NCBI GenBank assembly: GCA_028826165.1
Contig: JAPDFW010000022.1
Span: 62,001-126,000 of the forward strand
DNA: 64,000 bases
Source: Anaeramoeba ignava BMAN
Taxonomy: Eukaryota > Protista > Anaeramoebae
Direction of reading: 5' to 3'
The position numbers and the translations under genes are program-made. Positions 1,314 through 56,814 of the stretch are shown here, piece by piece. Every line of letters begins with the position of its first letter. Positions within the stretch are counted from its first letter, which is position 1. The notes under the pieces were generated by a model. The model was not told where the DNA came from and made no database searches. It worked only from the letters and a program-made list of their open reading frames with translations.

Positions 1314-1529
1314 AAATTAATTAAAAATTCAAAAAAAATTCATTTTACTCATTCATTAAATAAAAAAAAAAAGAAATTATAATTATAATTATAATTATAA
1401 CTATTTTTATTATTTAAATTTTAGAATTAATTTCCATTTGTTAAATTTCTTTTAAAAAATTGGAATAAAATTTCTCTTTTGAATTTTTTATTCTTTTTGG
1501 TTTTTTTTTTAAAGAAACTTTTTGAAAAT

Positions 1530-2387: not shown

Positions 2388-2619
2388 TGTTAATTTAAAA
2401 ATGAAAAAAATGAAAAAAATGAAAAAAAATGAAAAAGATTTTTTTTGAAATTTTTAATTAAAAAAATTTGAAATCAATTTTGAATTTCCAAAAGAATCTT
2501 TTGAGTTCTTTTGAAAAAAGAAAAAGAAAAAGAAAAAGAATCATTTTAAAATTTTTTATAAGAAAAGAAAAAAATTATTTCCATTCTTGATTCCGTTTTG
2601 TTTTCCAAATAAAAGATCT

Positions 2620-4135: not shown

Positions 4136-4406
4136 TTAATAAATTTTCTAAACAAAAATAATATTAAAAACAAATTTAAAAAAAAAAAGAAATTAATTAA
4201 GCAAAAAAAAAAGGAAAAAAAAAAAGAAAAAAAAAAATTTAAACAAAAATGAAATGAAAAAAAAAGAAAAAGAAAAAAAAATTTAATTTTATTTAAATTA
4301 TTTTCTCTTTTTTAAAAAAAAATCAAAAAACGTTTTGTATTTTAAAAGAACGTTTTGTGAAAAATAAATAAAAAATAAAAATAATAAACAAAAAATAAAT
4401 AAAAAG

Positions 4407-25663: not shown

Positions 25664-28600
25664 TTATTTTAGATTTTTTATAGTTGGTTTTTCTGAATCT
25701 TTTTCTGGAACATGAATTTTAAATCCAAAAATTTTTGGAACATATCTATGAGTTGGAAGAGGAGGTTGTAATTCAGGTTGAGAATGAAGAAGAAAATGTG
25801 CAAAAGTTGTACCAAAATAAGCACCATCCATTGCTAAAAAAAATAATAAAAAATTTAAATAAAAAATTTAAATCAAAAAAAAAACGGAAAAATTTTTTGC
25901 TTTTATTTTTGTTCTTCTTTTTTTACAAGCATGTCGAAGTAATTTTGGAACATAAAGCTTTTCACAACGAGGACAAAATAATTTAACAGTGTCCTTTTAA
26001 ATTTGTTTTTTTTTTTGAAAATAATAATAAATAAAATAATGAATAAAAAATCAGAAGAAAATTTTCAAGTTGAAAAGAAATTGATGGATTACTTGTCGAA
26101 CATTATCAGATAATCCTACAGGAAGGCAAGGTTGCTTTTCACAAAAAACTCTAGGACATCTTCCAAATTCACCATTTTGATATTTAGTAGTCTTTTTTTT
26201 AAGAAAACAAAAAGGGAAAAATATTTTATTTTGAAAAATTGAATATAAAATTTTTTGATTAAAATTTTCCTTTTTAAATACCATAAGTTGCATTCCTGGA
26301 GTAGTAATAATATATCTTGCATGAATTAACCCATAGAGCATTTCTGCTGCACTTTCTACAACTTCTTCTTGTTCTTCAGTTAATTGATCTTTAAGAAAAA
26401 AATTTTGAATTTTATTTTATAATTTATAATTTAATTTTGAATTTAATTTATAATTTAATTTTGAATTTAATTTTGAATTTAATTTTGAATTTAATTTTGA
26501 ATTTAATTTTGAATTTAATTTTGAATTTAATTTATAATTTAATATTGAATTTAATATTGAATTTAATATTGAATTTAATTTATAATTTATTTTATAATTT
26601 AATTTATAATTTAATATTGAATTTAATTTTGAATTTAATTTATAATTTAATTTATAATTTATTTTATAATTTATTTTATAATTTAATTTTGAATTTAATT
26701 TATAATTTAATTTATAATTTAATTTTGAATTTAATTTATAATTTAATTTATAATTTAATTTATAATTTAATTTATAATTTAATTTATAATTTAATTTATA
26801 ATTTAATTTATAATTTAATATTGAATTTAATTTATAATTTAATTTTGAGATTTAATTTTAGAATTTAATTTATAATTTAATTTTGAATTTAATTTTAGAA
26901 TTTAATTTATAATTTAATTTATAATTTAATTTATAATTTAATTTATAATTTAATTTATAATTTAATTTATAATTTAATTTATAATTTAATTTATAATTTA
27001 ATTTAGAATTTAATTTATAATTTAATTTTGAATTTAATATTGAATTTAATTTATAATTTAATTTATAATTTAATTTTATAATTTAATTTTGAATTTAATT
27101 TTGATTTTAATTTTTGAATTTAATTTATAATTTAATTTATAATTTAATTTATAATTTAATTTTGAATTTAATTTATAATTTAATTTTGAATTTAATTTAT
27201 AATTTAATTTATAATTTATTTTTGAATTTAATTTTGAATTTAATATTGAATTTAATATTGAATTTAATTTATAATTCAATTTTTGAATTTAATTTATAAT
27301 TTAATTTATAATTTAATTTATAATTTAATTTATAATTTAATTTTTGAATTTAATATTGAATTTAATTTTGAATTTAATTTTTGAATTTAATTTATAATTT
27401 AATATTGAATTTAATTTATAATTTAATTTATAATTTAATATTGAATTTAATTTATAATTTAATTTATAATTTAATTTATAATTTAATTTATAATTTAATT
27501 TATAATTTAATATTGAATTTAATTTTGAATTTAATATTGAATTTAATTTAAATTTAATTTTTATTTTTAATTTTGAATTTAATTTAGAATTTAATTTTTG
27601 AATTTAATTTAGAATTTAATTTAGAATTTAATTTTGAATTTAATTTTGAATTTAATTTTGAATTTAATTTATAATTTAATTTTGAATTTATTTTTTTTGA
27701 ATTTAATATTTAAATTTATTTTTAATTTATAATTTAATTTATAATTTAATTTATAATTTAATTTATAATTTAATTTATAATTTAATTTATAATTTAATTT
27801 TGAATTTAATTTATAATTTAATTTATAATTTAATTTTATAATTTAATTTTTAATTTAAATTTAGAATTTAATATTGAATTTAATTTTGAATTTAATATTG
27901 AATTTAATTTTAAATTTAATATTGAATTTAATTTTGAATTTAATTTTGAATTTAATTTATAATTTAATTTATAATTTAATTTAATTTATAATTTAATTTA
28001 TAATTTAATTTATAATTTAATTTATAATTTAATTTTGAATTTAATTTTAATTTTTGAATTTAATTTTAATTTAATTTTTGAATTTTTATAATTTAATTTA
28101 TAATTTAATTTATAATTTAATTTATAATTTAATTTATAATTTAATTTATAATTTAATTTTGAATTTAATTTATAATTTAATTTATAATTTAATTTATAAT
28201 TTAATTTATAATTTAATTTATAATTTAATTTATAATTTAATTTATAATTTAATTTTGAATTTAATTTTGAATTTAATATTGAATTTAATTTTGAATTTAA
28301 TTTTGAATTTAATTTATATTTTAATTTATAATTTAATTTTGAATTTAATTTAGAATTTAATTTAATTTAAATTTGAATTTAATTTATAATTTAATAATTT
28401 AATAATTTTGAATTTAATTTATAATTTAATTTTTGAATTTAATTTATAATTTAATTTTGAATTTAATTTTTGAATTTAATTTTTGAATTTAATTTTAATT
28501 TAATTTATAATTTAATTTATAATTTAATTTTGAATTTAATATTGAATTTAATTTATAATTTAATTTATAATTTAATTTTGAATTTAATATTGAATTTAAT

Positions 28601-29295
28601 TTTGAATTTAATAATTTAGAATTTAATTTATAATTTAATTTAGAATTTAATTTATAATTTAATTTAGAATTTAATTTATAATTTAATTTATAATTTAATT
28701 TTAAATTTAATTTAATTTATAATTTAATTTATAATTTAATTTATAATTTAATTTTGAATTTATTTTTTAATTTAATTTTGAATTTAATTTATAATTTAAT
28801 TTATAATTTAATTTTGAATTTAATTTAGAATTTAATTTATAATTTAATATTGAATTTAATTTATAATTTAATATTGAATTTATTTTAGAATTTATTTTAT
28901 AATTTAATTTATAATTTAATTTATAATTTAATTTATAATTTAATTTATAATTTAATTTATAATTTAATTTTGAATTTAATTTATAATTTAATTTTGAATT
29001 TATTTTTGAATTTAATATTGAATTTAATATTGAATTTAATTTATAATTTAATTTTATAAATAAATCTTAATCTACCAAGTTCAGGAGAATCAACATCTTT
29101 TATTGTTTGAAGTGCATATTTATAATAAGGAACACAACTTGATAATCCTGTTAAATTAAAATTATCCGCAATAAAAGATTCTTCAACTTCACACAAAAAT
29201 TCGTTTCCTTTTAAACTGCAAAACCAAGTTACCCATGAAACATTTTCATCTTCTTGATTTTGATTTTTTGAACGAGGTCGATTATCTTGAGCCAT
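25664..29295 (-). CDS. CSNK2B: Casein kinase II regulatory (beta) subunit
   Basis: [68 protein letters not shown]; first intron 26389-29075. Confidence 0.95.
26420..29056. repeat. Intronic minisatellite, 12-bp units TTTATAATTTAA / TTTTGAATTTAA
   Basis: About 2.6 kb tandem array within CK2 beta intron 1. Confidence 0.95.
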
Positions 29296-31859: not shown

Positions 31860-32922
31860 TAAATTTAAATTTAAATTAATAAAAGCATCGTTGGTTCAGT
31901 GGTAGAATACAAGATATTTATTAATTAATTATTTAGATAATTATTTAATTAAAAAGTGGAATAAAATAATATTAATTAAGAAATATATTTAATTAATAAA
32001 AATATTTATATTTTATTTATTAATTATTATTAAAATTAAAGAAATAAATTAAATAAAATAATTTAAATATTTAAATAAATAAATATGTTTTAAAAAATTA
32101 AAAAATAAGAAAAAAAATTAAATTTAAATTTAAATTAATAAAAAGCATCGTTGGTTCAGTGGTAGAATACAAGATATTTATTAATTAATTATTTAGATAT
32201 TTAATTAGATAAAAAGTGGAATAAAAAATAAATAAAATAATTAAAATAAAAAGTGGAATAAAATAATATTAATTAAGAAAGATATTTAATTAATAAAGAT
32301 ATTTATATTTTATTTATTAATTATTATTAAAATTAATGAAATAAATTTAATTAAAATATTTTAAATATTTAAATAAATAAATATGTTTTAAAAATTAAAA
32401 ATAAGAAAAATTAAATTTAAATTTAAATTAATAAAAGCATCGTTGGTTCAGTGGTAGAATACAAAATATTTATTAATTAGATATTTAATTAGATATTTAA
32501 TTAGATATTTATTTAGATATTTATTTAAATAAAAAGTGGAATAAAATAAATAAAATAATTTAGATAAAAAGTGGAATAAAATAATATTAATTAAGAAATA
32601 TATTTAATTAATAAAAATATTTATATTTTATTTATTAATTATTATTAAAATTAATGAAATAAATTTAATTAAAAATATTTAAATATTTAAATAAATAAAT
32701 ATGTTTTAAAAATTAAAAAATAAGAAAAAAATTAAATTTAAATTAATAAAAGCATCGTTGGTTCAGTGGTAGAATACAAAATATTTATTAATTAATTATT
32801 TAAATATTTATTTAGATATTTATTTAGATATTTATTTAAATAAAAAGTGGAATAAAATAAATAAAATAATTAAAATAAAAAGTGGAATAAAATAATATTA
32901 ATTAGGAAATATATTTAATTAA
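31860..32922 (+). repeat. Tandem array of tRNA-Gly 5' fragments with AT-rich spacers (continues at 37999-38148 after the transposon)
   Basis: GCATCGTTGGTTCAGTGGTAGAATACAA(G) at 31885, 32145, 32437 and 32752 is identical to the first 28-29 nt of the tRNA at 38149; spacers are homologous to each other. Confidence 0.95.
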
Positions 32923-33630
32923 AGCCTTCCCCGCAAGCAAAAATATTTTCTTTTACTTACACTTACAAAAAATTAAGTGTAATCATTCTCAAAAAATTGA
33001 GAAAAATGATTAATAAAAGCAAATATATCTAACTTTCGAAGCTTATCAGGTGATTTTTTTTTCAAAATATCCATTTTAGGAAATGATATACTCAAGCTGC
33101 TGCATATAAATAATTAGAAGATTAGATTTAAATTTAATTTTCATGCTCAAGAATGAAAAAAATTATTAAAATTTTATTGAAATCAATAATTTCTATTGTT
33201 GCAGAACTTTCAGAATCTGGTCCTATTTTTTTCAACATGCTTAATTTATAGATTATTTTATGTTCTTATTTAGGTTCAAATAAATTCAAAAACTTTCGTG
33301 TTTTATAGAAATGGGATGCTTATTTGTTGATCAAAAAATTGGCATTTTTTCAAATTTTTATATCAACTCATTGATCATTTATTTTGTCGATTTCAACCAT
33401 TAATCTTCTTTTATTTTTATTTTTATTTGTTTTTTTCTCTTACTTTTTTTTCTTATTTGTTGACAAACACTATTTAAATAAAAAAAAATATTTTATAAAA
33501 AAAAAATAACAAGATCACAAAACATTTTTCTTTTGACATTTTTTTAAAATTTTTTTCTTTTTTTCTATTTTCTTATTCTGTTTTATCTTTTTATTTTTTT
33601 TTCAAATCTTTGTTTTAATTCGTTTTTTAC

Positions 33631-36425
33631 ATGAAAGCAATAACTTGTTATATTTGTGGGAAAAAAAAAATCCCTAAAGCCCAAGTTCCATCCAAAAATG
33701 AATTATTTTTGAAATTAGAATCTACTCCAAGAAGAAAAAGTAATAAAATATGTAATCGGTGCTATAGAGATAATTTAAAAATGGTATATTTTAGTTATTT
33801 TGCTTCTTTTTAATTTTTTCTCATTCCATCTTTTTTCAGAAAAAATTTATTCAGGAAAACAAGGATATCAAAGAAGAAAATAGCTGCCTCAAACAAGAAT
33901 TAGATTATTTAAAAGAGTTGGTTCAACAACAAAAAAAAGAAATCAATCACCAATTCTCAATTTATAAAGAAGTCAAAAAACAATTGAAAACAACTCTCTC
34001 TTGGGTGAATATCCTCAATGAAAAATGTGACAGCATCGCTAGAACTGAAATGGAACTTAGAGAAAATCTGTGTGAAGTTCAAAAGGAAAAAGAAAATTTG
34101 AAGAATCAACAAATCACAATCCACTCACATTTGATGTATCAACTTACAAAAGAAAATCAAGATTTAAAAACACAAGTGGAAAAAAATCAGATTAAAATTG
34201 GGAATTTGAGAGATAGTGTATATTATTGGAAAATTACTAAACCGAAAAGAAAGGAAAAAAAGAAGGAGGAAGAACAAATGAAAAGAGATTCACTCAAAAA
34301 TCTCTCTCAAAATCAAACCTCACTTGATGGTGAAAATGAAAACAATCAAAATGAAAACAATCAAAATGAAATGGGAAAAGGAAAGGAAAAAACAAAAATT
34401 GAATCTAAATCAATTAAAAAATTCAGAAAACTATATGAAAACGATCGCAGAATGAGATCTGCATTTAATATTGGGACAAAAATTGTAGGAATCAGTATTT
34501 CAAAATTTTATAGATTCCTCAACTTATTTGAAATCAAGACACAAGATGGGTTGCAAGATTATTGCGATGAAGTTAAAATCAAATTAGCTCCAATAGTTAA
34601 TAGTATGGCAGAATCAATTCTAGATTTATCTGCAGAGGAAGTAGAACAATCTACTGATCCTTCTTCAACACAAACCATGGAACATATGAAAAATCACTTT
34701 ATATCTGATAAAGATATTGATAAAATTGCTAACTCCTCAAGAAAATTATTTATTAATAAAGAATTGACAAATTCATCTTCCCTTCTAGACCTCAAAGAAA
34801 AAATATATCAATTAGTCATAAGTAATGAAAAAAAAAATTCAATCGAAAGAAAAGATCAGAACAAGAATAATTCAAATCAACAGATAGAGAATGAATCTCA
34901 ACCAGAAATCGATTCCACTAAAAAAATAGATTCGATTTTTTCTCATGATGTAGCATATTCACATCGGAATAACCGAGCTGCAGATGCATGCGCAATTTTT
35001 ATTGAAGCGAACACAAAATTTAACAGAATTATACATTACCAAAGAATGAGCTCAACTTCAACCATCCATCCACAAAGTTTAGAGGGATTTTTGATTCCCA
35101 AAGGAATACAAAAGCTTTCGGAGAAATACAATATCCTTGCCACGGTTCATGACCAGAATACCTCATCTAAAGTTAAACAGTGTTTCCCGAATATCATGCA
35201 TTTACTAGATCCCTGGCACGTAACTAGATCAATTCGAAGAAGATACAACAAACTTGTTAACAAATTCTGTGGATCAAATAAAAAGAAACGCTCAAAAGAA
35301 GAAAGCGAGAAAATGCGAAAAAAAAAAGAACATTTGATGTCATGGAAAGAATCTATAATTTTCCATTTTCTAAGATGTGCAAAATCTTGCCAAGGCGATA
35401 TGACGACTTTATTATCTGAATGGTTTAGATATTTTCTCCACGCTAAAGGCGATCATTCCCTTTGCCCAAAAAATAGTCCATGCACAAAAAATGAAAATTC
35501 AAACGAAAATAAACATCCTGAAGATAAAAAAATTACAAACAAAGAGGAGGAAGCATTCTTCAAAATGATACTTTCTGATTTCACCATTATTAAAAAATTA
35601 ATTTTTTGTAGATATTTTTTATCCACAAGCTACAACGAATCCTTTTTCAGCACTTTAAACGGTTATCGCGAAAAAATAAGTCATTTTAAAAATTATAATC
35701 TTCTTTATCAACTTGCCATCATTGATTGGAACCAAAATAGGGAAAAAGAAAATGAAAAGGAAATAAATTTAGGAAACCAAGAAAACGAAATTGAATTCAA
35801 TGAAAAAAATGCATTACAAGAAAATCAAAAAAAAGAAAAAGATATGGAATGGCAAAAAGAATTACTTCATCTCTCTTTACCAGGTATCTTTCAAAAAAGT
35901 ACATCTTATTTGAAGAATTTAACTCTCTCAAGAATCAAAAAAAAGAAAAGAAATAGCTCAGAAGAAATTGTCCCTCCTCAAAAAGAAAAAAAAAGAAGTA
36001 GAAAGTCACCAAAAAAAGAAGCAAGTTTAAAAACAAAAAAAAACTTGATCTCAACATTTTTATTAAGTAAGATTCAACCCAATTTGTTTGATTTTGAAAA
36101 CTATTCCTTGCTTCCTACATTTCAAATCCATTTCAAAGATGCTTTGGAGATGTTAAATCCAAAAGAAACTCATAAACAAACTCAAAAGGAAACAGAGAAC
36201 TCATGTCCCAATATACATGATTTGCACATTTTTTCCAATCAAAATCCTTCATTGTTATCAAGAAAAAGTAAAATCGATAATAAAAATGACGTTCCCATTC
36301 AAACAAAAACAAACAATCATAATGCTATCCAAAATATTCAACTTCCCAAACCCAGAGAAATTCAACTCCTTGAGGAAGATTATATACACAACAAAAGAGA
36401 AGAAATAAAAGAGATTTCTGAATGA
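33631..36425 (+). CDS. DDE transposase (Kolobok/Mutator-like) with N-terminal C4 zinc finger
   Basis: Exon 1 (33631-33783) CYIC..CNRC; phase-0 intron 33784-33839; motifs FSHDVAYSHR, TVHDQN, LDPWHVTRS, HAKGDHSLC, STSYNESFFS. Confidence 0.82.
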
Positions 36426-37398
36426 TTTAATTGATAACCCCATTAATCTGTATCTTCCAAGTGGGATACAAGGATCATGGTGGAAAAGATGGGACTTAGA
36501 GCAAATGCTGGAGTCTCAAGATTTGTCTATTGGATTAGTAAATTTTTTATATCCTCAATATCAAAATGATGTAGAATTTACCAGATTAGATTTTGAACCC
36601 ACGATCCAAAAATTACATCAAGAATACAAAGATTTTCAAGCATTCAAAAACAGAAGAAATCAAATTTATGAAGATTTTGATAAATTTTTAGAAGCTTCAA
36701 AAAAAAGTTATCCCAAATTGATTGACCATTTCAACAATTTCGTTGAAAATCGACCGAGAATGAACAAAATAGATGTCTTTTCTAATTGGTTGATGTCTCC
36801 AGAACTCAGAAACCAAATTGAATTGTTTGAATCGTTAATAGAATTTGAGAAAGGAGTGGATGGTTGGAAGCAATTAAGAACAATATTATTTAATTTTGAA
36901 GAATGCGAAAGATTGATGAAATGGGATGAAAAGGAACCTTTAGATATTATACCAATAATATATTTGACTAATCATCATTATGTGTGTTTTTTGATTGATA
37001 AACAATTTCATAAAATCTATTTATATAACACTATTCCAAAATATGCAAAAAAGGAAGTAGAAGATATGGGAAATCATATAAAACAGTATATTAAATGGCG
37101 CATAAATGAAAATTATGAAATTGAAGAACTAGTCAAGAAAAAAATCCAAGAAGATGGCGCCCAATGCGGGAATTCAGTACTACTTTTTTTATGGTTGATT
37201 TTCACTATTAAAATTCCTATTGAAAAAGCAGTGGAAATTATCAACCATTCACTTGCTGTCAGATTTAGATTCATGATCCTAAAATGTATTTGTAAATCAA
37301 CCAGAATTCAATTATTATTCAAATCACCAGAATTCATTCAAGATATAATACAAAATCACCCCAAAAAATATCGGCACAATTCATTTTTTCTTTTTTGA
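36409..37398 (+). CDS. Ulp1/SENP-like (C48) cysteine protease domain, probably the C-terminus of the transposase
   Basis: IIPIIYLTNHHYVCFLID..IYLYNT..IQEDGAQCGNSVL gives His, Asn (usually Asp), Gln, Cys; the frame is open from 36409 and overlaps the transposase stop. Confidence 0.75.
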   Translation, partial: KRFLNDLIDNPINLYLPSGIQGSWWKRWDLEQMLESQDLSIGLVNFLYPQYQNDVEFTRLDFEPTIQKLHQEYKDFQAFKNRRNQIYEDFDKFLEASKKSYPKLIDHFNNFVENRPRMNKIDVFSNWLMSPELRNQIELFESLIEFEKGVDGWKQLRTILFNFEECERLMKWDEKEPLDIIPIIYLTNHHYVCFLIDKQFHKIYLYNTIPKYAKKEVEDMGNHIKQYIKWRINENYEIEELVKKKIQEDGAQCGNSVLLFLWLIFTIKIPIEKAVEIINHSLAVRFRFMILKCICKSTRIQLLFKSPEFIQDIIQNHPKKYRHNSFFLF

Positions 37399-38148
37399 TG
37401 AATCTCTCTAATTTTTAAACGTTAAATTGATTTTTTTTCAAATCATTTTTTCACATCTTTTATTTTTCAAAATCTTTTACAAAGAAAAAATAAAGAATTT
37501 TTGTTGAAGGAAATAATTGAATTTTGTATTGGATTCAGTTAAAATTAATATATTTCAAAATGAAAAAAGAAAAAATTTGAAAAATTGATCAAAACAATTA
37601 TCTTTTGAATTCTCATAAATTTCTTATTCATATCATTAATTGAATTTTTCTCATCAATTTCTTTTCTCAATAATCAAGTTCAGTTGTATGAAACAGAATA
37701 GAAAAAAGAACCAAAATGAAGAAATATTCAACAAAATTTTCCAAAAGATAAAAATTTGTTTGAAAAGTTTTGGATTATGAAATTATGGAGATTGTCCCAA
37801 ATAAAAAAAAAGTAGTATTTCTTTTTCTTTTTCCAAATAGAAAAAATTGATGTTTTTTTGATCTATTCTTTAATTATTTTTTTTAATAAAAAGGGGAAAA
37901 ATCAAATTTTTTATTTTTTTTTATTTTTTTTTCAAAGTGACAGCTGTCACTTCAAAAGGGGAAAAAATGACAAAATATTTTTGCTTGCGGGGAAGGCTTT
38001 AATAAAAATATTTATATTTTATTTATTAGTTATTATTAAAATTAATGAAATAAATTTAATAAAAATATTTAAATATTTAAATAAATAAATATGTTTTAAA
38101 AAATTAAAAAATAAGAAGAAAAATTAATTAAAATTTAAATTAATAAAA

Positions 38149-38219
38149 GCATCGTTGGTTCAGTGGTAGAATACAAGCTTGCCATGTTTGTGATCCGGGT
38201 TCGATTCCCGGACGATGCA
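38149..38219 (+). tRNA. tRNA-Gly (anticodon GCC), 71 nt, no intron
   Basis: Cloverleaf: GCATCGT/ACGATGC acceptor, GTTC/GAAT D-stem, CAAGC-TTGCCAT-GTTTG anticodon arm, CCGGG-TTCGATT-CCCGG T-arm; T-runs downstream. Confidence 0.97.
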
Positions 38220-38480
38220 CTTTAATTTATATTTTTTTTTTTAAATTATTTTTTTTTCCTTTTTTTTTTAATTAAAAAAAAATCTTTTTTTAGTTTTTAA
38301 ATTATGATTTTTTTTAATTAAAAAATATTTTAAAATTTAATTTACAAAAACTTTATTTATTTAATTTAATCAATTATGTTTTATTAAATAGAAAGGATCT
38401 TTATTGAAAAAGAAATTAAAATTTTTTCATTTTTTTTTCATTTTTTTTTGTTATTTTTTATTAAAATTTAAAAATTTAAA

Positions 38481-41400
38481 ATGGGGAATTTTGAAAGTAA
38501 AAAAATGATTAAAAAAAATCAATTAAAATCATATAGAAAGAAAATACATGAATCACAACAACCAGTTATTTTATTTCTTTCAAATGGAGTTATAATTGAA
38601 GCAAATAAACAAGCTCAAATTCTTTTTGAAGTTCCAAATGATTCATTTTTATTAAAAGAATCTTTATCAAATTTAACAGTTGAATTTCAAGATATTCCCA
38701 AAAAAAGCACAAAAGAATTTATTCAAGATTTACTTGATGCTGTTTCTCAGTAAATAAATAAATAATTAATTAAATTTTATTTATTATTTATTATTATTAT
38801 TATTTATTATTTATTAAAAAATTAAATAAAAGATTACAAAGTGGAACTATTGATGTTGATTTTCAATGTTTAACAGCTAAAAAAAATCCAATTTTTGTTC
38901 ATGTATTTATTACAACAATCAATTTATCTGGTTCAAAAGCTATTGAATGTGTTTTTACAAAACCTTCAGAAAGAATGAAACAATTAGAAGAAAAAGCTGC
39001 AAAAAAAACTAAAGATTATAAACAAGAAATTGAAAATATCAAATTGAAAATCAAAAAACTTAAATTTGAAATTAAAAATTTAGAAAGTTCAGATATGAAA
39101 GGTTCACTTCAAATGAAATATAATGCAATGCTTGAAAGATTGAAAACAAAAAATAAAGAAGTTGAAAGTTTAAATTTGAAAATTGATTCTTTAAAAATGC
39201 AACTTGGAGAAAAAGAAAATAATAAATTAAAAGAAAAAATTGATGAACTTTTAGAAAAAAAACAAAAATTATTTGAAATCATTAAAACAAGATGGGTTAC
39301 AGAAAGAAAAAGAGAACAATTCCAACATTTATTAAATCAAGAAACCAAGAAATCTAAAAAATATAAAAGAGAATTAGATTATCATAAACAATTATTTGAA
39401 GAATTAAAAATCAAAAAGAAAAATTTAGAAATTAAATCAAATGAATTTATAAAATCATTAGAACCTGATTCTGATTTTAAAGAAAGTGAAAATGAAAATG
39501 AAAATCAAAATCAAAATCAAAATCAAATTGAAAATCAAAATCAAAATCAAAATCAAAATCAAATTGAAAATCAAATTGAAAATCAAATTGAAAATCAAAA
39601 TCAAAATCAAAATCAAAATCAAAATCAAAATCAAAATAAAATTGAAAATCAAAATCAAATTGAAAATAAAAATGAAAATCAAATTGAAAATGAAATTGAA
39701 AATAAAATTGAAAATGAAGATAAAAATCAAATTGAAAATCAAAATCAAAATCAAATTGAAAATGAAAATCAAAATCAAAATCAAATTGAAAATCAAATTG
39801 AAAATGAAAATCAAAATGAAAATCAAAATGAAAATCAAAATGAAAATCAAAATGAAAATCAAAATGAAAATCAAAATGAAAATCAAAATGAAAATCAAAA
39901 TGAAAATCAAAATCAAAATCAAAATGAAAATCAAATTGAAAATCAAAATCAAAATCAAATTGAAAATAAAAATCAAAATCAAAATCAAAATCAAAATCAA
40001 AATCAAAATCAAATTGAAAATCAAATTGAAAATAAAAATCAAAATCAAAATCAAAATCAAAATCAAAATGAAAATCAAAATGAAAATCAAATTGAAGATA
40101 AAAATGAAAATCAAAATCAAAATCAAATTGAAAATCAAAATCAAAATCAAAATGAAAATGAAAATGAAAATCAAAATAAAAATCAAATTGAAAATAAAGA
40201 TAAAAATCAAAATGAAAATCAAATTGAAAATCAAAATCAAAATCAAAATCAAAATCAAAATCAAATTGAAAATGAAAATGAAAATCAAAATGAAAATCAA
40301 ATTCAAAATAAAATTGAAAATCAAAATCAAAATGAAAATGAAAACCAAATTGAAGATAAAAATCAAATTGAAAATCAAATTGAAAATCAAAATCAAAATC
40401 AAAATCAAAATCAAATTCAAATTGAAAATGAAAATGAAAATCAAAATCAAAATCAAATTGAAAATGAAAATGAAAACCAAATTGAAAATCAAATTGAAAA
40501 TGAAAATGAAATTGAAAATGAAATTGAAAATCAAATTGAAAATGAAAATGAAAATGAAAATGAAAATGAAGAAGATAAAATATTTAAAATTATTAAAGAA
40601 ATATCCAAAAAAATTGAAGAAGAAGTTGAAAAAGAAATTAATGATGAATTAAAAAATGAAAATCAAAAAAGAATAGAAGCAGTTGTTGAAAAAAAAGAAG
40701 AAAAAGAAAATTATGAAATGATTTCAGATAATGAAGAAATTGAAATGAGATCAGAAAGTGAAGATGAACTTGAAATTGAAGTTGAAAAATATCAAAATGA
40801 AATTATTGAAATTCAGAAAAAAATAAATGAAGAAAAAGAAATAAAAAAGAAAGCAGAAATACAAAGACAAAAAGAAATCAAAGCACAAAAAGCAATTCAA
40901 GAAAAAATCAATATTTTAATGAATGAATTGAAAAAGAAAACATTTGAAAATAATAAACTTCGAATTGAAATTGAAAATATGAGTCAAACAGATTTAGCAA
41001 ATTCATTAGAAACTGATACTTATTCTGATATTTCAGAAGTTTGTTATTATAAATAATATTTATAAATAATATTTATAAATAATAAAATAAATAAATAAAA
41101 TAAATAGGATGCACGTTCAAAAGATGGAACAACATCAACATCAACAACAAGATTTCAACAAATAGAAGAAAATTCTTTTGATGAAAATGTAAATTTATTT
41201 AAAAATAATATTTCCTTTTTTTTTAAATTAAAAATTAAATTTAAAATTATAGAGTGAAAATCCATTTAAAGATTTAATAAGTGTTTTAAATAATCCACAA
41301 ACAGTAGAATATTTTAGAGAATTTTTAGTTGAACATTTTAATCAAGAAAATTTATTACTTTATATTGAAATTGAAAAATTTAAAAAACTTTCTGAAAATT

Positions 41401-43123: not shown

Positions 43124-44229
43124 CTAATTTTGGAAAAGTAAATTTCTGATTTCAGGTAATAAAGCCTCAAAAGCGAGAAGAAGTCTGTTATCAAGAGTGT
43201 TTGAACAAACAATTTTTCCGTTTGGAGAACTTAAAACAACACCTCCAGAACTAATTTTCAAATAAAATAAAAATTAAAAATGAAATTAAAATTAAAATTA
43301 AAATTAAAATTAAAATTAAAATTAAAATTAAAATTAAAATTAAAATTAAAATTAAAATTAAAAATAAAAATACCAAAATGAATCATTTTCAGAAGGAGGA
43401 GGAGGAAGGAAATCACTGTTTAATAAATGGGCTTGACAAACAAAACCAGTTAATTCTTTAAATTTTTTAGTTGCATAAGGAATTGATTTTTGGACGATTT
43501 CATAATCGCATTGTCTAACTTGAATGAATAATTTTGGTTCCATAATTTTTAACATTCCCTATTTATTAAATAATTTTGAATTTTAAATATTTTTGATTAA
43601 TATTTTTGATTAATATTTTTAATTTAAATATTTTTGAATTTTAAATATTTTTGAATTTTAAATAATTTTGAATTTAAATATTTTTGAATTTAAATATTTT
43701 TGAATTTAAATATTTACTTGAAGAATTAAATCTGAAAGTAATTGTTGATATGATTGTTTGGATACAGTTAAGTCAGAAATTCTTTTGTGTGCTTCTGATA
43801 AAATTTCTTGTATACACTCAAATTTTGTTTTGAGGATTTGAAGTCTTGAAGAATTAATAATATTTGATTGATAACTTGATATTTTTTATAATTTTAATTT
43901 TAATTTTAATTTTAAATTTTAATTTTAATTTTAATTTTAATTTTAATTTTAATTTTAATTTTAATTTTAATTTTAATTTTAATTTTAATTTTAATTTTAA
44001 TTTTTAATTTTAATTTTTATGCAAACATTTTATGATCAATTTGAGCTTGTTTATGCTTTCTTTCAAATTCTTCATTTAATTTAATTTGTTCTTCTTCAAC
44101 TTTTGTGTTTCTTTGAACAGAAGAATCTTCTTTGGCTTTTTGTTTAATAGATTCAGCTCTTTCTTTAGCTTCTTCAATAATAAAAGCAATCATTTTATCA
44201 ATGTGTTCTTTCTTTTCTTTTTCATTCAT
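43124..44229 (-). CDS. ATP6V1E: V-type ATPase subunit E
   Basis: IDKMIAFIIEEAKERAESI, SNIINSSRLQILK, LLSDLILQ, SGGVVL, GKIVCSNTLDNRL, LPEIRNLLF; three introns. Confidence 0.92.
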
Positions 44230-44449
44230 TTTATATTATTTTTTGTTTTAATGTAAATTTTTCAATATAAAGTTTTGAAAAAAATGATTTGATTTTTTAT
44301 TCCAAATGGAAAAATTTTTGAAAAGGATTTTTAAGTTATATTAAATTGGAAAAAATGGTTAAAATGATTAAAATGTTTTTTTTAAAAAATGAAAGAAAAA
44401 AAATGAAAAAAAAAAAAAGAAAAATTTATTCAAAAAATGGTTAATTGAA

Positions 44450-47400
44450 GAATTATTTTATTAAAAGGTTTATTAATAAATTAATTTAAAATTATTTTAT
44501 TAATAAGTTTATAAAGGAATTAATTAACTTTTTAATTGGAAAATAAATAAAAAATTTAATTAAAATTTTCTTATTGAAAAATTAAAATAAAATTTAATTA
44601 TTTTATTAAAAGAGTTTATTAATAAATTAATTTAAAATTATTTTATTAATAAGTTTATAAAGGAATTAATTAATGTTTTAAATAAAAAATTAAATAAAAA
44701 TTTAATTAAAATTTCTTATTGAAAAATTAAAATAAAATTTCTTATTGAAAAATTAAAATAAAATTTAATTATTTTATTAAAAGATTTATTAATAAATTAA
44801 TTTAAAAGTATTTTATTAATAAGTTTATAAAGGAATTAATTAACTTTTTAATTAAAAATTAAATAAAAATTTAATTAAAATTTCTTATTGAAAAATTAAA
44901 ATAAAATTAAATTATTTTATTAAAAGGTTTATTTATAAATTAATTTAAAAGTATTTTATTAATAAGTTTATAAAGGAATTAATTAATGTTTTAATTGGAA
45001 AATTAATAAAAATTTAATTAAAATTTCTTATTGAAAAATTAAAATAAAATTAAATTGTTTTAATAAAAGGTTTATTAATAAATTAATTTAAAAATTATTT
45101 TATTAATAAGTTTATAAAGGAATTAATTAACTTTTTAATTAAAAATAAATAAAAATTTAATTAAAATTTTCTTATTGAAAAATTAAAATAAAATTTAAAT
45201 TATTTTATTAAAAGATTTATTAATAAATTAATTTAAAATTATTTTATTAATAAGTTTATAAAGGAATTGATTAACTTTTTAATTGAAAAATTAAATAAAA
45301 AAAATTTAATTAAAATTTCTTATTGAAAAATTAAAATGAAATTGAATTATTTTATTAAAAGATTTATTAATAAATTAATTTAAAAGTATTTTATAAATAA
45401 ATTTATAAAGGAATTAATTAACTTTTAATTAAAAATTAAATAAAAATTTAATTAAAATTTCTTATTGAAAAATTAAAATAAAATTAAATTAAATTAATAA
45501 AGGTTTATTAATAAATTAATTTAAAATTATTTTATTAATAAGTTTATAAAGGAATTAATTGATGTTTTAATTAAAAATAAATAAAAATTTAATTAAAATT
45601 TCTTATTGAAAAATTAAAATGAAATTAAATTGTTTTATTAAAAGGTTTATTTAATAAATTAATTTAAAATTATTTTATTAATAAATTTATAAAGGAATTA
45701 ATTAATGTTTTAATTGAAAAATATATTTAAAAATTAATTAAAATTTCTTATTGAAAAATTAAAATGAAATTAAATTATTTTATTAAAAGGTTTATTAATA
45801 AATTAATTTAAAATTATTTTATTAATAAAGTTATAAAGTAATTAATTAACTTTTTAATTAAAAAATTAAATAAAAATTTAATTAAAATTTCTTATTGAAA
45901 AATTAAAATGAAATTAAATTATTTTAATAAAAGGTTTATTAATAAATTAATTTAAAAGTATTTTATTAATAAATTTATAAAGGAATTAATTAATGTTTTA
46001 ATTAAAAATATATTTAAAAATTTAATTAAAATTTCTTATTGAAAAATTAAAATGAAATTAAATTATTTTAATAAAAGATTTATTAATAAATTAATTTAAA
46101 ATTATTTTATTAATAAGTTTATAAAGGAATTGATTAACTTTTTAATTAAAAATATATTTAAAAATTTAATTAAAATTTCTTATTGAAAAATTAAAATAAA
46201 ATTAAATTAAATTTTTAATAAAAGGTTTATTAATAAATTAATTTAAAATTATTTTATAAATAAATTTATAAAGGAATTGATTAACTTTTTAATTAAAAAT
46301 TAAATAAAAATTTAATTAAAATTTCTTATTGAAAAATTAAAATAAAATTAAATTAAATTAATAAAAGGTTTATTAATAAATTAATTTAAAAGTATTTTAT
46401 AAATAAATTTATAAAGGAATTAATTGATGTTTTAATTAAAAAATAAATAAAAAAATTTAATTAAAATTTCTTATTGAAAAATTAAAATGAAATTAAATTG
46501 TTTTATTAAAAGGTTTATTTATAAATTAATTTAAAATTATTTTATTAATAAATTTATAAAGGAATTAATTGATGTTTTAAATAAAAATTAAATAAAAAAA
46601 TTTAATTAAAAATTTAATAATCCAAAAATTAAAATGAAATTAAATTAAATTAATAAAAGGTTTATTTATAAATTAATTTAAAAGTATTTTATTAATAAAG
46701 TTTATAAAGGAATTGATTAACTTTTTAATTAAAAATTAATTAAAAATTAATTAAAATTTCTTATTGAAAAATTAAAATTAAATTAAATTAAATTTAATAA
46801 AAGGTTTATTTATAAATTAATTTAAAATTATTTTATTAATAAGTTTATAAAGGAATTAATTGATGTTTTAATTGGAAAATAAATAAAAATTTAATTAAAA
46901 TTTCTTATTGAAAAATTAAAATTAAATTAAATTAAATTAATAAAAGGTTTATTTATAAATTAATTTAAAATTATTTTATTAATAAATTTATAAAGGAATT
47001 AATTGATGTTTTAATTAAAAAATAAATAAAAATTTAATTAAAATTTCTTATTGAAAAATTAAAATAAAATTAAATTATTTTAATAAAAGGTTTATTAATA
47101 AATTATTTTAAAAGTATTTTATTAATAAGTTTATAAAGGAATTAATTAATGTTTTAATTAAAAATATATTTAAAAATTTAATTAAATTTTCTTATCCAAA
47201 AATTAAAATGAAATTGAATTATTTTAATAAAAGGTTTATTTATAAATTAATTTAAAATTATTTTATTAATAAAGTTTATAAAGGAATTAATTGATGTTTT
47301 AATTGGAAAATAAATAAAAATTTAATTAAATTTTCTTATTGAAAAATTAAAATAAAATTAAATTGTTTTATTAAAAGGTTTATTTATAAATTAATTTAAA

Positions 47401-48230
47401 ATTATTTTATTAATAAGTTTATAAAGGAATTAATTAATGTTTTAATTGGAAAATAAATAAAAATTTTTAATTTAAAAATTAAAATGAAATTGAATTAATT
47501 TAATAAAGGTTTATTAATAAATTAATTTAAAATTATTTTATTAATAAGATTATAAAGTAATTAATTAACTTTTAATTTTATTAATTAAAAATTAAATAAA
47601 AAATTTAATTAAAATTTCTTATTGAAAAATTAAAATGAAATTTAATTATTTTAATAAAAGATTTATTAATAAATTAATTTAAAATTATTTTATTAATAAG
47701 TTTAAAGGAATTTAATTAATGTTTTTAAATAAAAATATATTTAAAAATTTAATTAAAATTTCTTATTGAAAAATTAAAATGAAATTAAATTAAATTAATA
47801 AAAGGTTTATTTATAAATTAATTTAAAAGTATTTTATAAATAAAGTTATAAAGGCAATAATTGATGTTTTAAATAAAAAATATATTTAAAAATTAATGGA
47901 AAAATTTAGGAAAAATTTAGGAAAATTTTTTTAATTTAAAAATGGTTAATAGATTAAAATAAAATTAAATTATTTTAATAAAAGGTTTATTTATAAATTA
48001 TTTTGGAATTATTTTATTAATAAGTTTATAAAGGAATTAATTGATGTTTTAAATAAAAAATATATTTAAAAATTAATGGAAAAATTTAGGAAAATTTAAG
48101 GAAAATTTTTTTAATTTAAAAATGGTTAATAGATTAAAATAAAATTAAATTATTTTAATAAAAGATTTATTTATAAATTATTTTATTAATAAGATTATAA
48201 AGGAAATAATTGATGTTTTAATTGGAAAAT
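44450..48230. repeat. AT-rich satellite with ~143-147-bp unit, about 26 copies
   Basis: Landmark TAAAGGAAT and TTTCTTATTGAAAAATT recur at roughly 143-147-bp intervals (e.g. about 44971, 45115, 45259, 45406, 45547, 45690). Confidence 0.92.
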
Positions 48231-53544: not shown

Positions 53545-55690
53545 TTAATATTTATTCCAATATTTATTTTAATATTTATTCCAATATTTATTTTAATATT
53601 TATTCCACTTTTTATTCCATGTTTTAATATTTATTTTTATATTTATTCCAATATTTATTCCAATATTTATTTCAATATTTATTCCACTATTTATTTTAAT
53701 ATTTATTCCAATATTTATTCCAATATTTTAATATTTATTTTAATATTTATTCCAATATTTATTTTAATATTTATTCAATATTTATTTTAATATTTATTTT
53801 AATATTTATTTTAATATTTATTCCAATATTTATTTTAATATTTATTTTAATATTTATTTTAATATTTATTCCACTTTTTATTCCATGTTTTAATATTTAT
53901 TTTTAATATTTAATTTAATATTTATTTTAATATTTATTCCAATATTTATTCCAATATTTATTTTAATATTTATTTTATTTATTTTAATATTTAATTTAAT
54001 ATTTATTTTAATATTTATTTAATTTATTTTAATATTTAATTTAATATTTATTTTAATATTTATTTTAATATTTATTTTAATATTTATTTTTAATATTTAT
54101 TTTTAATATTTATTTTAATATTTATTTTAATATTTATTTTAATATTTATTTCAATTTTTATTCCAATTTTTAATATTTATTTTAATATTTATTTTAATAT
54201 TTATTTTAATATTTATTTTAATATTTATTTTAATATTTATTCCAATATTTATTTTAATATTTATTTTAATATTTATTTTTAATATTTATTTTAATATTTA
54301 TTTTAATATTTATTTTAATATTTATTTTTAATATTTTTAATATTTATTTTAATACTTATTTTAATATTTATTTTAATATTTATTTTAATATTTATTTTTA
54401 ATATTTATTTTAATATTTATTTTAATATTTATTTCAATATTTATTCCAATATTTATTTTAATATTTATTTTAATATTTTATTTTAATATTTATTTTAATA
54501 TTTATTTTAATATTTATTTTAATATTTATTTTAATATTTATTTTAATATTTATTTTAATATTTATTTTTAATATTTATTTTAATATTTATTTTTAATATT
54601 TATTTTAATATTTTTAAATATTTATTTTAATATTTTATTCAATATTTTATTCCAATATTTATTCTAATATTTATTCCAATATTTTTAATAGTTATTTTAA
54701 TATTTATTTTTAATATTTATTTTTATTTATTTTTTTTTATTTAATTTTATTTATTTTTATTTATTTTAATATTTATTCCACTTTTTATTCCATGTTTTAA
54801 TATTTATTTTTAATATTTATTTTAATATTTATTTTAATATTTATTTCAATATTTATTTTAATATTTATTTTAATATTTATTTTAATATTTATTCCAATAT
54901 TTATTTTAATATTTATTTTAATATTTATTCCACTTTTTATTCCATGTTTTAATATTTATTTTAATATTTATTTTAATATTTATTTTAATATTTATTTTAA
55001 TATTTATTCCACTTTTTATTCCATGTTTTAATATTTATTCCAATATTTATTTTAATATTTATTCCAATATTTATTCCAATATTTATTCTAATATTTATTC
55101 CAATATTTTAATAGTTATTTTAATATTTATTTTTAATATTTATTTTAATATTTATTTTAATATTTATTTTTAATATTTATTTTAATATTTATTTTAATAT
55201 TTATTCCACTTTTTATTCCATGTTTTAATATTTATTTTTAATATTTAATATTTATTTTTAATATTTATTCCAATATTTATTCCAATATTTATTTTAATAT
55301 TTATTCCACTTTTTATTCCATGTTTTAATATTTATTTTAATATTTATTTTAATATTTATTCCACTTTTTATTCCATGTTTTAATATTTATTTTAATATTT
55401 AATATTTATTCCAATATTTATTTTAATATTTAATATTTAATATTTATTTTAATATTTATTTTAATATTTATTCCACTTTTTATTCCATGTTTTAATATTT
55501 ATTTTAATATTTATTCTAATATTTATTTTAATATTTATTTTAATATTTATTTTAATATTTTTTTTAATATTTATTTCAATATTTATTTTAATATTTATTT
55601 TAATATTTATTTTAATATTTTTAATATTTAATTTAATATTTATTTTAATATTTAATTTAATATTTATTTTAATATTTATTTTAATATTTA
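53545..55690. repeat. Intergenic minisatellite, 12-bp unit AATATTTATTTT/CC with interspersed CCACTTTTTATTCCATG variant
   Basis: About 2.1 kb tandem array read directly. Confidence 0.93.
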
Positions 55691-56814
55691 TGAAATTAAA
55701 AAAAAAAAAGATTCCGATCTCCTTTTAAAACAAATTTTTTATTCATTTTTTTTGTTAAGTTTATTTAAGAAAAAAAATTTTTTTTTTTTAAAAATTTTAT
55801 ATCCCTGCTTTCAAATTTAAAAAAGTTTTTATTATTAAAATGTAAAAAAAAAAGAAGCAAATGAGAATTTATCATTGTTCTTCTTTTTTGATTTTTTATT
55901 ATTATTGAATTGGACAAATTAACTTCTAAAATTTTCAATAAATTTTAGAAATAGAAACAAAAATAAATAAAGAATATGAGTTGATCTAATACTAATTGAA
56001 AGAAACTAAGCTAAAAATTAAAATTAAAATTAAAATGGTGAATGAATTTTAAAAGAAGAAAACAAAAAAAAAATTTTTTTTAATTATTTTTTTTTTATTT
56101 AAATTTTTTTTTATTAATTTTTATTTTTTTTTCTTTCACAAAAATTCATTTTTTTTCTTTTTGAACTCCTTTTTTTTTATGTATCTGATCAGATCAAAAT
56201 ATTAAACATTTCCTTTTTAAATAAATTATAATTAGAAAAAATAAAACTATAATTAATAATAACAAAAACCATTCAGTAAATTTTACTTATTTTTTCTTTA
56301 GATTTCTTTTCATTTTTTTACTATAAAAAAATTTTTTTTTTCATAAAAATGTTTTTTCTTAAATCATTTTTGAAAAAAAAAATATAAAAAGAAACAGGAA
56401 AAAATAAGTGAAATTTACTGGTTGAATAACGGAAAATAAATTACAATATTTAATACTTTAACCACAATTTATCAAATATGATGGAAAATAATAAAAAATA
56501 TTAATAATAATAATCCGATTATAATTAAAAAATAGAACAAAATTGTGAATTTGAAAAATTAAATAAAAAAAACAAATTCATCTTTAATTAAAAAATTATA
56601 TAAAAAAAAATAAAAAACAATTCAATTTATAATTCAAGTGTTAAAAGTCGAATTTTGAAATATAAATATAAAAAAATTTTTCTTAAATTCTTTACTAATT
56701 TATGTTATTTATCTTTTCAAATAGTTTTCTTTCCTTTTTTTATTTCAAAAAAAAAAAACAAATTTGTTTTTTTATTAAAATAATAGAATCTTATTAATTA
56801 TTTGTTTAGTGATA

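Follow-up and report, generated by a model that had tools for sequence, protein, structure and literature searches.

Fusions of transposases with Ulp1 or OTU deubiquitinase/deSUMOylase domains recur over DNA-transposon superfamilies (Ginger1, Mutator, and others). Ulp1-like domains also occur in CACTA and Zisupton elements, and, to our knowledge, the role of transposase fusions with Ulp1 or OTU has never been shown. The Ginger1 transposases of Hydra carry a C-terminal Ulp1 domain, and Ulp1-bearing Mutator elements exist (PMC2836005). Kolobok elements are described as duplicating TTAA, having AG termini, and encoding a DDE transposase that bears a THAP domain and an H2CH motif, the latter defined in the same study, and the inverted ends of the Xenopus elements start with AGC or AGT (PMC6004289). 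A search of the literature returned no paper on Kolobok with Ulp1, Kolobok with a SUMO protease, or Kolobok with PF20700, and, for Kolobok with a protease domain, a single paper concerned with transposable elements of nematodes.

The element described here spans 5,076 bp (32923-37998) of the window, i.e., the whole 64,000-nucleotide stretch of Anaeramoeba ignava DNA that was analyzed. With a probability of roughly 0.8, it is an autonomous cut-and-paste transposon of the Kolobok superfamily with a single two-exon gene, which ancestrally coded for a transposase-protease fusion of ∼1,240 aa. The assignment was made by the published description (PMC6004289) and by features of homologues. Similar to Xenopus XKol/Kolobok-1_XT (PMC6004289), it shows a TTAA duplication and AG(C) termini, and its DDE transposase has a zinc finger at the N-terminus and, between the second D and the E, a zinc motif of His and Cys. 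Unlike the Xenopus element, its finger is of the C4 type with no detectable THAP, the fourth H2CH ligand is replaced, the transposase bears a C-terminal clan-CE protease, and the host is an anaeramoebid protist. It shares with Ginger1 and the Ulp1-bearing Mutator elements the physical joining of a DDE transposase to an Ulp1-type clan-CE protease, and with Ginger1 also the C-terminal position of the protease; however, those elements belong to other transposase superfamilies (integrase-like and MULE) with other duplications, and their Ulp1 domains match PF02902, whereas the A. ignava domain does not. The novelty is the pairing of already-known parts, and the kind of element is itself not new.

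The ends of the element and its target site were as follows:

32919-32922, no strand: left TTAA target-site duplication, present as a single TTAA in the consensus of the uninterrupted repeat units
32923-32949, + strand: left terminal inverted repeat of 27 bp, beginning AGCCTTCCCC, identical in 5/5 copies
37972-37998, - strand: right terminal inverted repeat of 27 bp, the perfect inverse of the left end
37999-38002, no strand: right TTAA target-site duplication, adjoining the right inverted repeat

The element interrupts a 318-bp tandem repeat, and the consensus of the uninterrupted repeat has one TTAA at the insertion point (the empty site), so the TTAA duplication is real. A genome-wide copy search found five full-length copies in the A. 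ignava genome, 97-100% identical, with TTAA on 10/10 flanks and the same 27-bp ends and AG...CT termini (AGCC...GGCT) in all of them. From the window alone, a TA duplication with AAGCC...GGCTT termini was equally possible; this was ruled out because a T precedes the TA and an A follows it at all ten flanks. Substitutions among the five copies amount to ∼0.2-0.6%, and the family is young, low-copy, and recently active. The sequence-only reading of this DNA had described an apparently complete element with perfect 27-bp inverted repeats, AG..CT ends, and a TTAA duplication judged against the neighboring repeat units, had suggested recent activity, and had proposed a genome-wide search for copies and their duplications. 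The window, the repeat consensus, and the five copies bear out each of these points except completeness, which holds for the ends but not for the coding part, as the fused frame is fully open in none of the five copies as assembled.

The gene was resolved into the following parts:

33631-33783, + strand: exon 1, 51 aa, with a CxxC-x31-CxxC zinc finger; equal to residues 1-51 of P0001 and placed at the site that THAP occupies elsewhere in Kolobok
33784-33839, + strand: predicted intron of 56 nt, GT...AG, read from the sequence and matching the splice of the database gene model
33840-36425, + strand: exon 2, with a coiled-coil region, the DDE core, and a long basic linker; this copy stops at TGA 36423-36425
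36407-36410, + strand: run of four A, A3 in 4/4 other copies; the extra A is private to the window copy and shifts the protease domain out of frame

Each exon was used as a query of its own and then set against M0811_03984, a database protein; the two translations equaled its residues 1-51 and 52-912. Both the exon 1 finger and the intron position recur in the diverged sister family found on contig C68, which is 46% identical to the window element in the core and 37% identical in the protease domain. The C68 element shares its first 10 bases with the window element and has the ends AGCC...GGCT, and TTAA follows the right end in both copies of the sister family. Together with the database protein match, the sister family supports the intron-containing, C4-finger DDE transposase that had been read from the sequence.

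In the assembled window copy, the stop codon at 36423-36425 is followed by a 297-aa ORF initiated by an ATG at 36505, and the database gene model is of 912 aa; an element of two genes, in which an independent protease gene follows that of the transposase, would account for both. This arrangement is nevertheless improbable. The split depends on the single extra A, without which (as in the four other copies) both ORFs read as one frame; the annotated proteins P0020 and P0111, derived from other copies, cross the junction uninterrupted; the 26 codons that precede the ATG are kept as protein in the C68 family; and that family holds the transposase and protease in one ORF of 1,534 aa. Since the extra A is private and the sister family has both domains in one ORF, the protease is best read as an ancestral C-terminal domain of the transposase and not as a separate gene. 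Hence, of the earlier description of a downstream protease in place of KolX, the clan-CE protease stands but its status as a gene of its own does not. The assembly is Nanopore-based, and homopolymer runs hold most of the indels; the extra A that splits the window copy may be a true slip that inactivated it, or else a homopolymer error of Nanopore sequencing.

The catalytic core of the transposase was delimited by alignment with 55 homologues, some of them fragments (alignment A1):

34947-35639, + strand: catalytic core
34947-34949, + strand: D370 of the exon-2 translation, D in 46/46 ungapped rows
35151-35153, + strand: D438, D in 52/52 ungapped rows
35439-35483, + strand: H534-x4-H539-x2-C542-x5-C548, a zinc motif that varies the H2CH pattern of Kolobok
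35637-35639, + strand: E600, E in 55/55 ungapped rows

The sequence LDPWH at exon-2 residues 456-460 contains a D-x-W-H motif, of which alignment columns W120 and H121 are nearly invariant. In the zinc motif, columns H195, H200, and C209 show little or no variation, and the fourth ligand is His in 43 of the 55 rows; it is Lys in the window transposase, which together with four close relatives carries an extra Cys (H2C2-like). An exhaustive HMMER search with the core gave 108 matches, THAP-bearing animal proteins among them, and a mayfly homologue (P0009) lies in a TTAA-flanked element with TTAA at 5/5 visible ends. A word-indexed protein search with the core returned nothing beyond the copies of A. 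ignava itself. No Pfam family was matched by the window transposase or by the downstream ORF2, and Pfam showed no THAP in exon 1, where the CxxC-x31-CxxC finger is found instead. Among the 55 aligned homologues, Pfam recognized PF20700 (“Mutator-like transposase”) in 23, THAP in five, and piggyBac in none. The “Mutator-like” label of the homologues, the absence of any Pfam match to the window transposase itself, the lack of a recognizable THAP, and the replaced fourth H2CH ligand count against Kolobok. The missing THAP does not alone exclude it, because only 5/55 homologues, some of them fragments, have this domain.

Besides Kolobok, piggyBac is the eukaryotic superfamily with TTAA as its target, and its termini are CCC...GGG. 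An element of this superfamily would explain the duplication found here; however, the termini are AG...CT, the piggyBac transposase domain (Pfam DDE_Tnp_1_7) is absent from the window transposase and from all 55 aligned homologues, and the core contains D-x-W-H and H-H-C, both motifs of the Kolobok/Mutator-like group. A search of PDB sequences with the transposase profile found no solved relative and no piggyBac transposase. Target-site duplications of Mutator elements are ∼8-11 bp, as opposed to the strict 4-bp TTAA here and in the mayfly homologue. A Mutator/MULE element with Ulp1, like the KI-MULEs, would have to make 4-bp duplications by chance; it would fit the 23 homologues with PF20700, weak MULE matches in 7/55 homologues (best E=1.3e-4; absent in the window transposase), and the Ulp1-carrying Mutator elements already described (PMC2836005). 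All of the MULE matches fall below the Pfam threshold, and the combination of THAP, an H2CH-type motif, and AG termini fits the published description of Kolobok (PMC6004289). Both readings were rejected on the evidence of domains, termini, and duplication, the Mutator origin as very improbable and the piggyBac origin as more remote still. The proposed Kolobok type is sustained by the TTAA and AG...CT ends and by a DDE core homologous to THAP/H2CH animal transposases, one of them TTAA-flanked, with no piggyBac signature.

The domain downstream of the basic linker was located by alignment, profile, and fold searches, and the residues of its motif are numbered within it:

36409-37398, + strand: frame of the clan-CE (Ulp1/SENP-like) protease domain
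36976-36978, + strand: His (H184), invariant against the relatives C68 and C117
37027-37029, + strand: Asn (N201), invariant against C68 and C117
37147-37149, + strand: Gln (Q241), invariant against C68 and C117
37165-37167, + strand: Cys (C247), invariant against C68 and C117

The C68 and C117 sequences, both from the A. ignava genome, were the diverged relatives aligned with the domain. The order and spacing of the residues, His-17-Asn-40-Gln-6-Cys, resemble those of yeast Ulp1, of which the catalytic residues are His514, Asp531, Gln574, and Cys580. Profile matches in the PDB were CE proteases, led by ChlaDUB1 (E=5e-4) and ChlaDUB2 (E=0.0085-0.0096), to the catalytic residues of which those of the A. 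ignava domain align. Its language-model neighbors were Peptidase_C48 clusters (0.94). In a fold search with Foldseek, CE proteases made up nearly all of the top 50 matches, most of them with a probability of 0.9-1.0 and the best with E=2.5e-4, although the model used is of low confidence (mean pLDDT 57.5, <50 in the Cys region). Comparison with VIA gave Z of 5-7 to SENP, Ulp1, XopD, and NEDP1 (up to 7.0 for SENP5, SENP2, XopD, and SENP1), with low TM-scores and with Z ≤7 lying in the range that the tool calls common. A single-sequence AlphaFold model of ORF2 (pLDDT 42) was unusable. The predicted core of strand-strand-strand-helix-strand-helix is shared with Ulp1/SENP, ChlaDUB, XopD, and SnCE1, the top sequence and fold matches of the domain; the domain differs from these proteases in having Asn for Asp, a long helical N-terminal extension, and a divergence that places it below Pfam detection. 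PF02902 was matched neither by the window domain nor by the C68 protein that contains it (residues 184-1534), and since the gathering score was not reached, the similarity shown is at the level of the clan and not formal C48 membership. A scan of metagenome loci with the protease profile detected no relatives, and word-indexed protein searches with this profile or with the C-terminal region of the C68 protein returned only A. ignava copies or nothing. The downstream domain is hence predicted, from profiles and models, to be a very divergent cysteine protease fold of clan CE, similar to Ulp1/SENP. The sequence-only reading had named an Ulp1/SENP-like His/Asn/Gln/Cys protease and suggested an HMM and structure search; the invariant motif and the CE-clan proteases that dominate the profile and fold matches agree with it, at clan level.

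The pS273R protease of ASFV, a member of clan CE that was among the fold matches, works with a His-Asn-Cys triad. This stands against the view that the C-terminal domain is catalytically dead or is a repurposed CE-fold module, either a binder of SUMO/ubiquitin or an acetyltransferase like YopJ/ChlaDUB1. Such a module would be in keeping with the Asn in place of the canonical Asp, with a divergence too great for PF02902, and with best sequence matches to ChlaDUB enzymes, ChlaDUB1 having been solved with bound coenzyme A. Yet His, Asn, Gln, and Cys are invariant among relatives of only 21-37% identity, which argues for retained catalysis, and loss or change of function is considered unlikely.

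A public protein, P0067 (1,518 aa, unannotated, run ERR1352942), similarly has, at residues 816-1035, a distant core of the same transposase family (E=6.6e-5 against the window transposase) and, C-terminal to it, a clan-CE protease. Unlike the A. ignava domain, that of P0067 is a canonical, Pfam-positive Peptidase_C48 (E=4e-23). Profile-profile alignment of the two with hhalign covered 26 columns around the Cys with a probability of 20%, and with no more than this region alignable, the two fusions may have arisen independently. The sequence-only reading had suggested that the Kolobok lineage may be undescribed; P0067 is a distant counterpart already present in public data.

The fusion protein would thus be ordered as a C4 finger, a coiled-coil, a DDE RNase H-like core (with D-x-W-H and H-H-C-C), a basic linker, and a clan-CE peptidase with His-Asn-(Gln)-Cys. 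The element would insert at TTAA and duplicate it. The finger, a putative DNA binder, stands where THAP sits in other Kolobok transposases, and the DDE core would excise and reinsert the element. The most likely role of the protease would be that of a SUMO- or ubiquitin-like-specific isopeptidase aiding transposition, e.g., by stripping modifications off chromatin or repair factors or the transposase itself; cleavage of the fusion protein is a less likely role. The element would add Kolobok, from a deep-branching metamonad relative, to the superfamilies with such fusions. Because the family is young and low-copy and its copies are almost intact, it is a tractable system for the role of the protease in excision and integration. 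Caution is called for, as such elements are under-described by the gene model of 912 aa, by the label “Mutator-like” in Pfam, and by the failure of Pfam to find the protease.

It is conceivable, although we hold it only tentatively, that an unrecognized, Pfam-invisible clan-CE branch with a His-Asn-Cys triad serves in A. ignava as a portable transposition-helper module, fused to Kolobok and PIF/Harbinger transposases and selected in both. If so, removing SUMO/ubiquitin-like marks, or a related activity, would directly benefit cut-and-paste transposition in this organism. The same C-terminal protease domain is borne by a PIF/Harbinger transposase in the A. ignava genome, so that a single genome holds one divergent protease module on two unrelated transposases.

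The element and its predicted gene were delimited in the window as follows:

32923-37998: element, 5,076 bp, first bases AGCCTTCCCC, last bases the exact reverse complement
33631-33783: exon 1, 51 aa, with a CxxC-x31-CxxC finger
after exon 1, up to the exon 2 start at 33840: predicted intron, 56 nt, GT...AG

The terminal inverted repeat was perfect over 27 bp, and TTAA was present on both sides of the element. The insertion site is a 318-bp tandem repeat (31939-32922) resuming past 37999, whose consensus unit contains a single TTAA at the matching place. The unbroken units thus represent the empty site and show the 4-bp duplication to be real; hence, the perfect ends and the TTAA duplication noted by the sequence-only reading were confirmed in the window as well as by the repeat consensus. 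Taken alone, the window would equally allow a 2-bp TA duplication and an element extended by one base at either end; the other copies excluded this. The repeat units (31939-32922 and 37999-38220) each carry only the first ∼26 bases of tRNA-Gly(GCC), e.g., 32744-32769, and the sole complete tRNA-Gly lies at the array end (38149-38220).

The Anaeramoeba ignava assembly (42.8 Mb, 147 contigs; the window is C13:62001-126000) was searched at the DNA level. The collection of copies and target site duplications that had been called for yielded five full-length copies, on contigs C13, C67, C89, C75, and C107, with 97-100% identity. The 27-bp ends were the same in all five, and TTAA lay on either side of each copy, the flanking DNA being otherwise unrelated. 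The copies on C13, C67, and C89 differed by 10-12 substitutions per 5 kb, indicating that the family is young. A genome search with the 10-nt terminus recovered all ten ends of the five copies together with the ends of a sister family, which is too diverged in DNA to be found by the genome DNA search:

C68:366671-372376: sister family, 5,706 bp, termini AGCCTTCCCCC and AGCCTTCTCCC, similar to those of the element
C69:∼257110-262953: second sister-family copy, 5'-truncated, without the left end and with frameshifts

The right flank of both sister copies (loci L063/L065) was TTAA, and the left flank on C68 was TTAA plus an additional A, possibly a homopolymer error. The terminus search also returned three further exact matches of the AGCCTTCCCC form and three of the AGCCTTCTCC variant; one extra AGCCTTCCCC-form match lay on C68, ∼2.7 kb upstream of a degraded match to the transposase. 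The pattern read backwards, used as a control, matched 11 times in the genome, so that isolated terminus matches may be due to chance. The search gave no indication of a large non-autonomous (MITE) family. A perfect 18-bp palindrome, AAGTGACAGCTGTCACTT, was present at 37935-37952, 20 bp inside the right inverted repeat, and a different short palindrome, ACACGTGT, occupied a similar subterminal position in the C68 family; these are candidate sites of transposase binding or hairpin formation.

The exon translations corresponded to residues 1-51 and 52-912 of the hypothetical protein M0811_03984 [Anaeramoeba ignava] (912 aa), the exon-2 protein being identical to the matching part. The sister family keeps the C4 finger exon and the intron position; on C68 the finger exon is alike and ends at the same ...KM/GT junction. 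The proposal of a C4-finger, intron-bearing transposase gene was therefore borne out, the intron itself being predicted from gene prediction and conservation in the C68 family. No Pfam match was found in the transposase (query). A HMMER search with exon-2 residues 340-700 gave 108 matches at E≤1e-3, the best beyond fragments of the element's own family having E=1.8e-29 and 1.3e-26. Conservation was read from an alignment of 55 homologues (exon-2 numbering; counts for the D and E columns refer to ungapped rows):

D370: D in 46 of 46 rows
D438: D in 52 of 52 rows
E600: E in 55 of 55 rows
456-460 (LDPWH): D-x-W-H motif, nearly invariant
H534, H539, C548: invariant or almost invariant
fourth zinc ligand: 43 of 55 rows have His; the query has K, and four close relatives likewise lack His and have an extra Cys in common

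Named homologues came from a mayfly, an ostracod, a nemertean, and a hemichordate, the others being metagenomic or raw-read assemblies. A Pfam scan of the 55 aligned sequences identified PF20700 "Mutator-like transposase" in 23, THAP in five, and Peptidase_C48 in one, with weak MULE matches in seven. The Pfam name would favor assignment of the element to Mutator, but the 4-bp duplication argues against it. piggyBac was excluded by the absence of its domain from all 55 sequences, the absence of a PDB match, and the different termini. Kolobok elements duplicate TTAA, their transposase carries DDE, THAP, and H2CH motifs, and the inverted ends of full-length Xenopus copies all start with AG (AGCGATTC... 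or AGTGATAC...) (PMC6004289). TTAA adjoined all five visible ends in three genomic copies of the element encoding the mayfly relative P0009; the transposase family thus rides TTAA-inserting elements in two very distant hosts. Hence, TTAA, the AG ends, DDE homology to THAP-bearing proteins, and the TTAA-flanked mayfly relative uphold the Kolobok-type reading, and the element is probably a Kolobok, a placement based on the published description and on its homologues. The mayfly copies (loci L067-L069; Cloeon dipterum, GCA_949628265.1) encode an identical 483-aa PF20700-type transposase and have TTAA flanks, termini ACCAATTGG...CCAATTGGT, and long inverted arrays of subterminal tandem repeats; the element measures ∼9.4 kb in L067 and L069 and appears to be a mayfly Kolobok with recent activity.

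The transposase frame of the window copy stops at a TGA (36423-36425), with the protease frame offset by +1, an arrangement that had been taken for a separate downstream gene. The window reads AAAA at ∼36407-36410 and each of the other four copies AAA; the shorter run makes the protease frame continuous with that of the transposase, and P0020 and P0111, database proteins predicted from other copies, run unbroken over the junction. On C68, the DDE core and the protease domain (46% and 37% identity, respectively) lie in one uninterrupted 1,534-aa ORF. The two-gene arrangement was accordingly abandoned in favor of one fused protein. Retention of an open frame and of the catalytic residues at 37% identity argues for selection on the protease domain as a component of the transposase.

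As assembled, none of the five copies has the whole fused frame open. The one-base difference alone blocks it in the window copy; on C89 the junction is fused and the frame shifts ∼100 nt further on, while C67, C75, and C107 each have several to many frameshifts. The description of the transposon as apparently complete thus stands for its 27-bp ends and TTAA and not for its coding sequence. The A. ignava BMAN assembly was built from R9 Nanopore reads polished with Racon, Nanopolish, and Pilon (PMC11550330). Between copies, indels were broadly as frequent as substitutions or more so (11 vs. 12, 10 vs. 10, 13 vs. 30, and 63 vs. 56). From 70% to 91% of the indels fell in homopolymer runs. Short-read polishing works poorly in multi-copy repeats. 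Given this location, the type of assembly, and the poor polishing of repeats, many of the indels may be assembly errors.

The frame at 36409-37398 gave no Pfam match. Two relatives of the domain were found in A. ignava, the C-terminus of the C68 protein (37% identity) and that of an 848-aa protein on contig C117 (21-24%), and H184, N201, Q241, D243, Q246, C247, and G248 were invariant in the three-sequence alignment. The spacing His-17-Asn-40-Gln-6-Cys may be set beside the 17, 43, 6 of yeast Ulp1. A single-sequence PDB search matched ChlaDUB2 (E=0.0085), with an alignment covering the His, Asn/Asp, and Gln...Cys-Gly positions, and XopD (E ∼1-1.6). The three-sequence profile matched ChlaDUB1 (E=5e-4) and ChlaDUB2 (E=0.0096), eight of its ten PDB matches being chlamydial CE proteases. 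Language-model neighbors were Peptidase_C48 clusters (score 0.94). The AlphaFold model, from a five-sequence alignment, was modest (mean pLDDT 57.5, Cys region <50). Nearly all of its top 50 Foldseek matches were clan-CE enzymes (best E 2.5e-4), including SnCE1, SENP1/2/5, Ulp1, ChlaDUB1/2, XopD, RickCE, ASFV pS273R, and the monkeypox core protease, and VIA-align with the same low-confidence model gave Z 5-7 to SENP5, SENP2, XopD, SENP1, a Ulp1-like protease, and NEDP1. None of these lines is strong by itself, but all agree, and it was concluded from motif and modeled fold that the domain is a putative clan-CE, Ulp1/SENP-like peptidase with a His-Asn-Cys triad. The Ulp1/SENP-like His/Asn/Gln/Cys protease originally suggested is retained at the level of clan CE, on motif, PDB, and fold matches; the domain does not reach the Pfam threshold for family C48.

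The element is thus TIR-bounded, TTAA-duplicating, and recently multiplied, with a complete DDE triad and a fused CE-type domain having the full catalytic set. The finger and adjoining regions would bind the element ends, and the DDE core would perform cut-and-paste. Most likely, by analogy, the protease domain would strip host factors or the transposase of SUMO or ubiquitin-like modifiers during transposition, a role that has been proposed for Ulp1 and OTU domains in Ginger1 and Mutator elements (PMC2836005). Alternatively, the domain could self-process the fusion protein or act as an acyl-transferase; sequence does not separate these two readings from modifier removal.

Ulp1 is known as a C-terminal fusion in Ginger1 and as a domain in Mutator elements (PMC2836005). 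CACTA and Zisupton elements were also listed as Ulp1 carriers in the sequence-only reading. In the library covered, which excludes Repbase reports, no publication was found that connects Kolobok with Ulp1 or a SUMO protease. Two further fusions were recovered:

ERR1352942 (run), contig of 4,896 bp (L070), ORF 330-4886: P0067, 1,518 aa, unannotated
C117 ∼141971-144514 (L042:1228-3771, minus strand): PIF/Harbinger transposase, 848-aa ORF, DDE_Tnp_4 (E=5.5e-26) and HTH_Tnp_4

P0067 shares the same-family transposase core (residues 816-1035), whereas its protease is, unlike that of the query, a canonical Peptidase_C48 (1324-1515, E=4e-23). The architecture of transposase plus C48 therefore occurs elsewhere, and the P0067 and A. 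ignava fusions are possibly independent. In the C117 protein, the C-terminal 300 aa are homologous to the element's protease-like domain with His, Asn, Gln, and Cys kept, so that one genome carries the same protease module on two unrelated transposase superfamilies. This double capture, by Kolobok and PIF/Harbinger transposases, is the main point of interest. The protease domain also had matches within long open frames of C74 and C134 and weaker ones on C137, C126, C8, and C60.

The A. ignava BMAN genome is 80.65% A+T (PMC11550330), and even against this value the G+C content of 4-9% at window positions 6001-8000, 26001-28000, 44001-48000, and 54001-56000 is extreme. These low-G+C stretches include long tandem arrays with a 12-nt period, e.g., 28000-29059 and 39489-40570.
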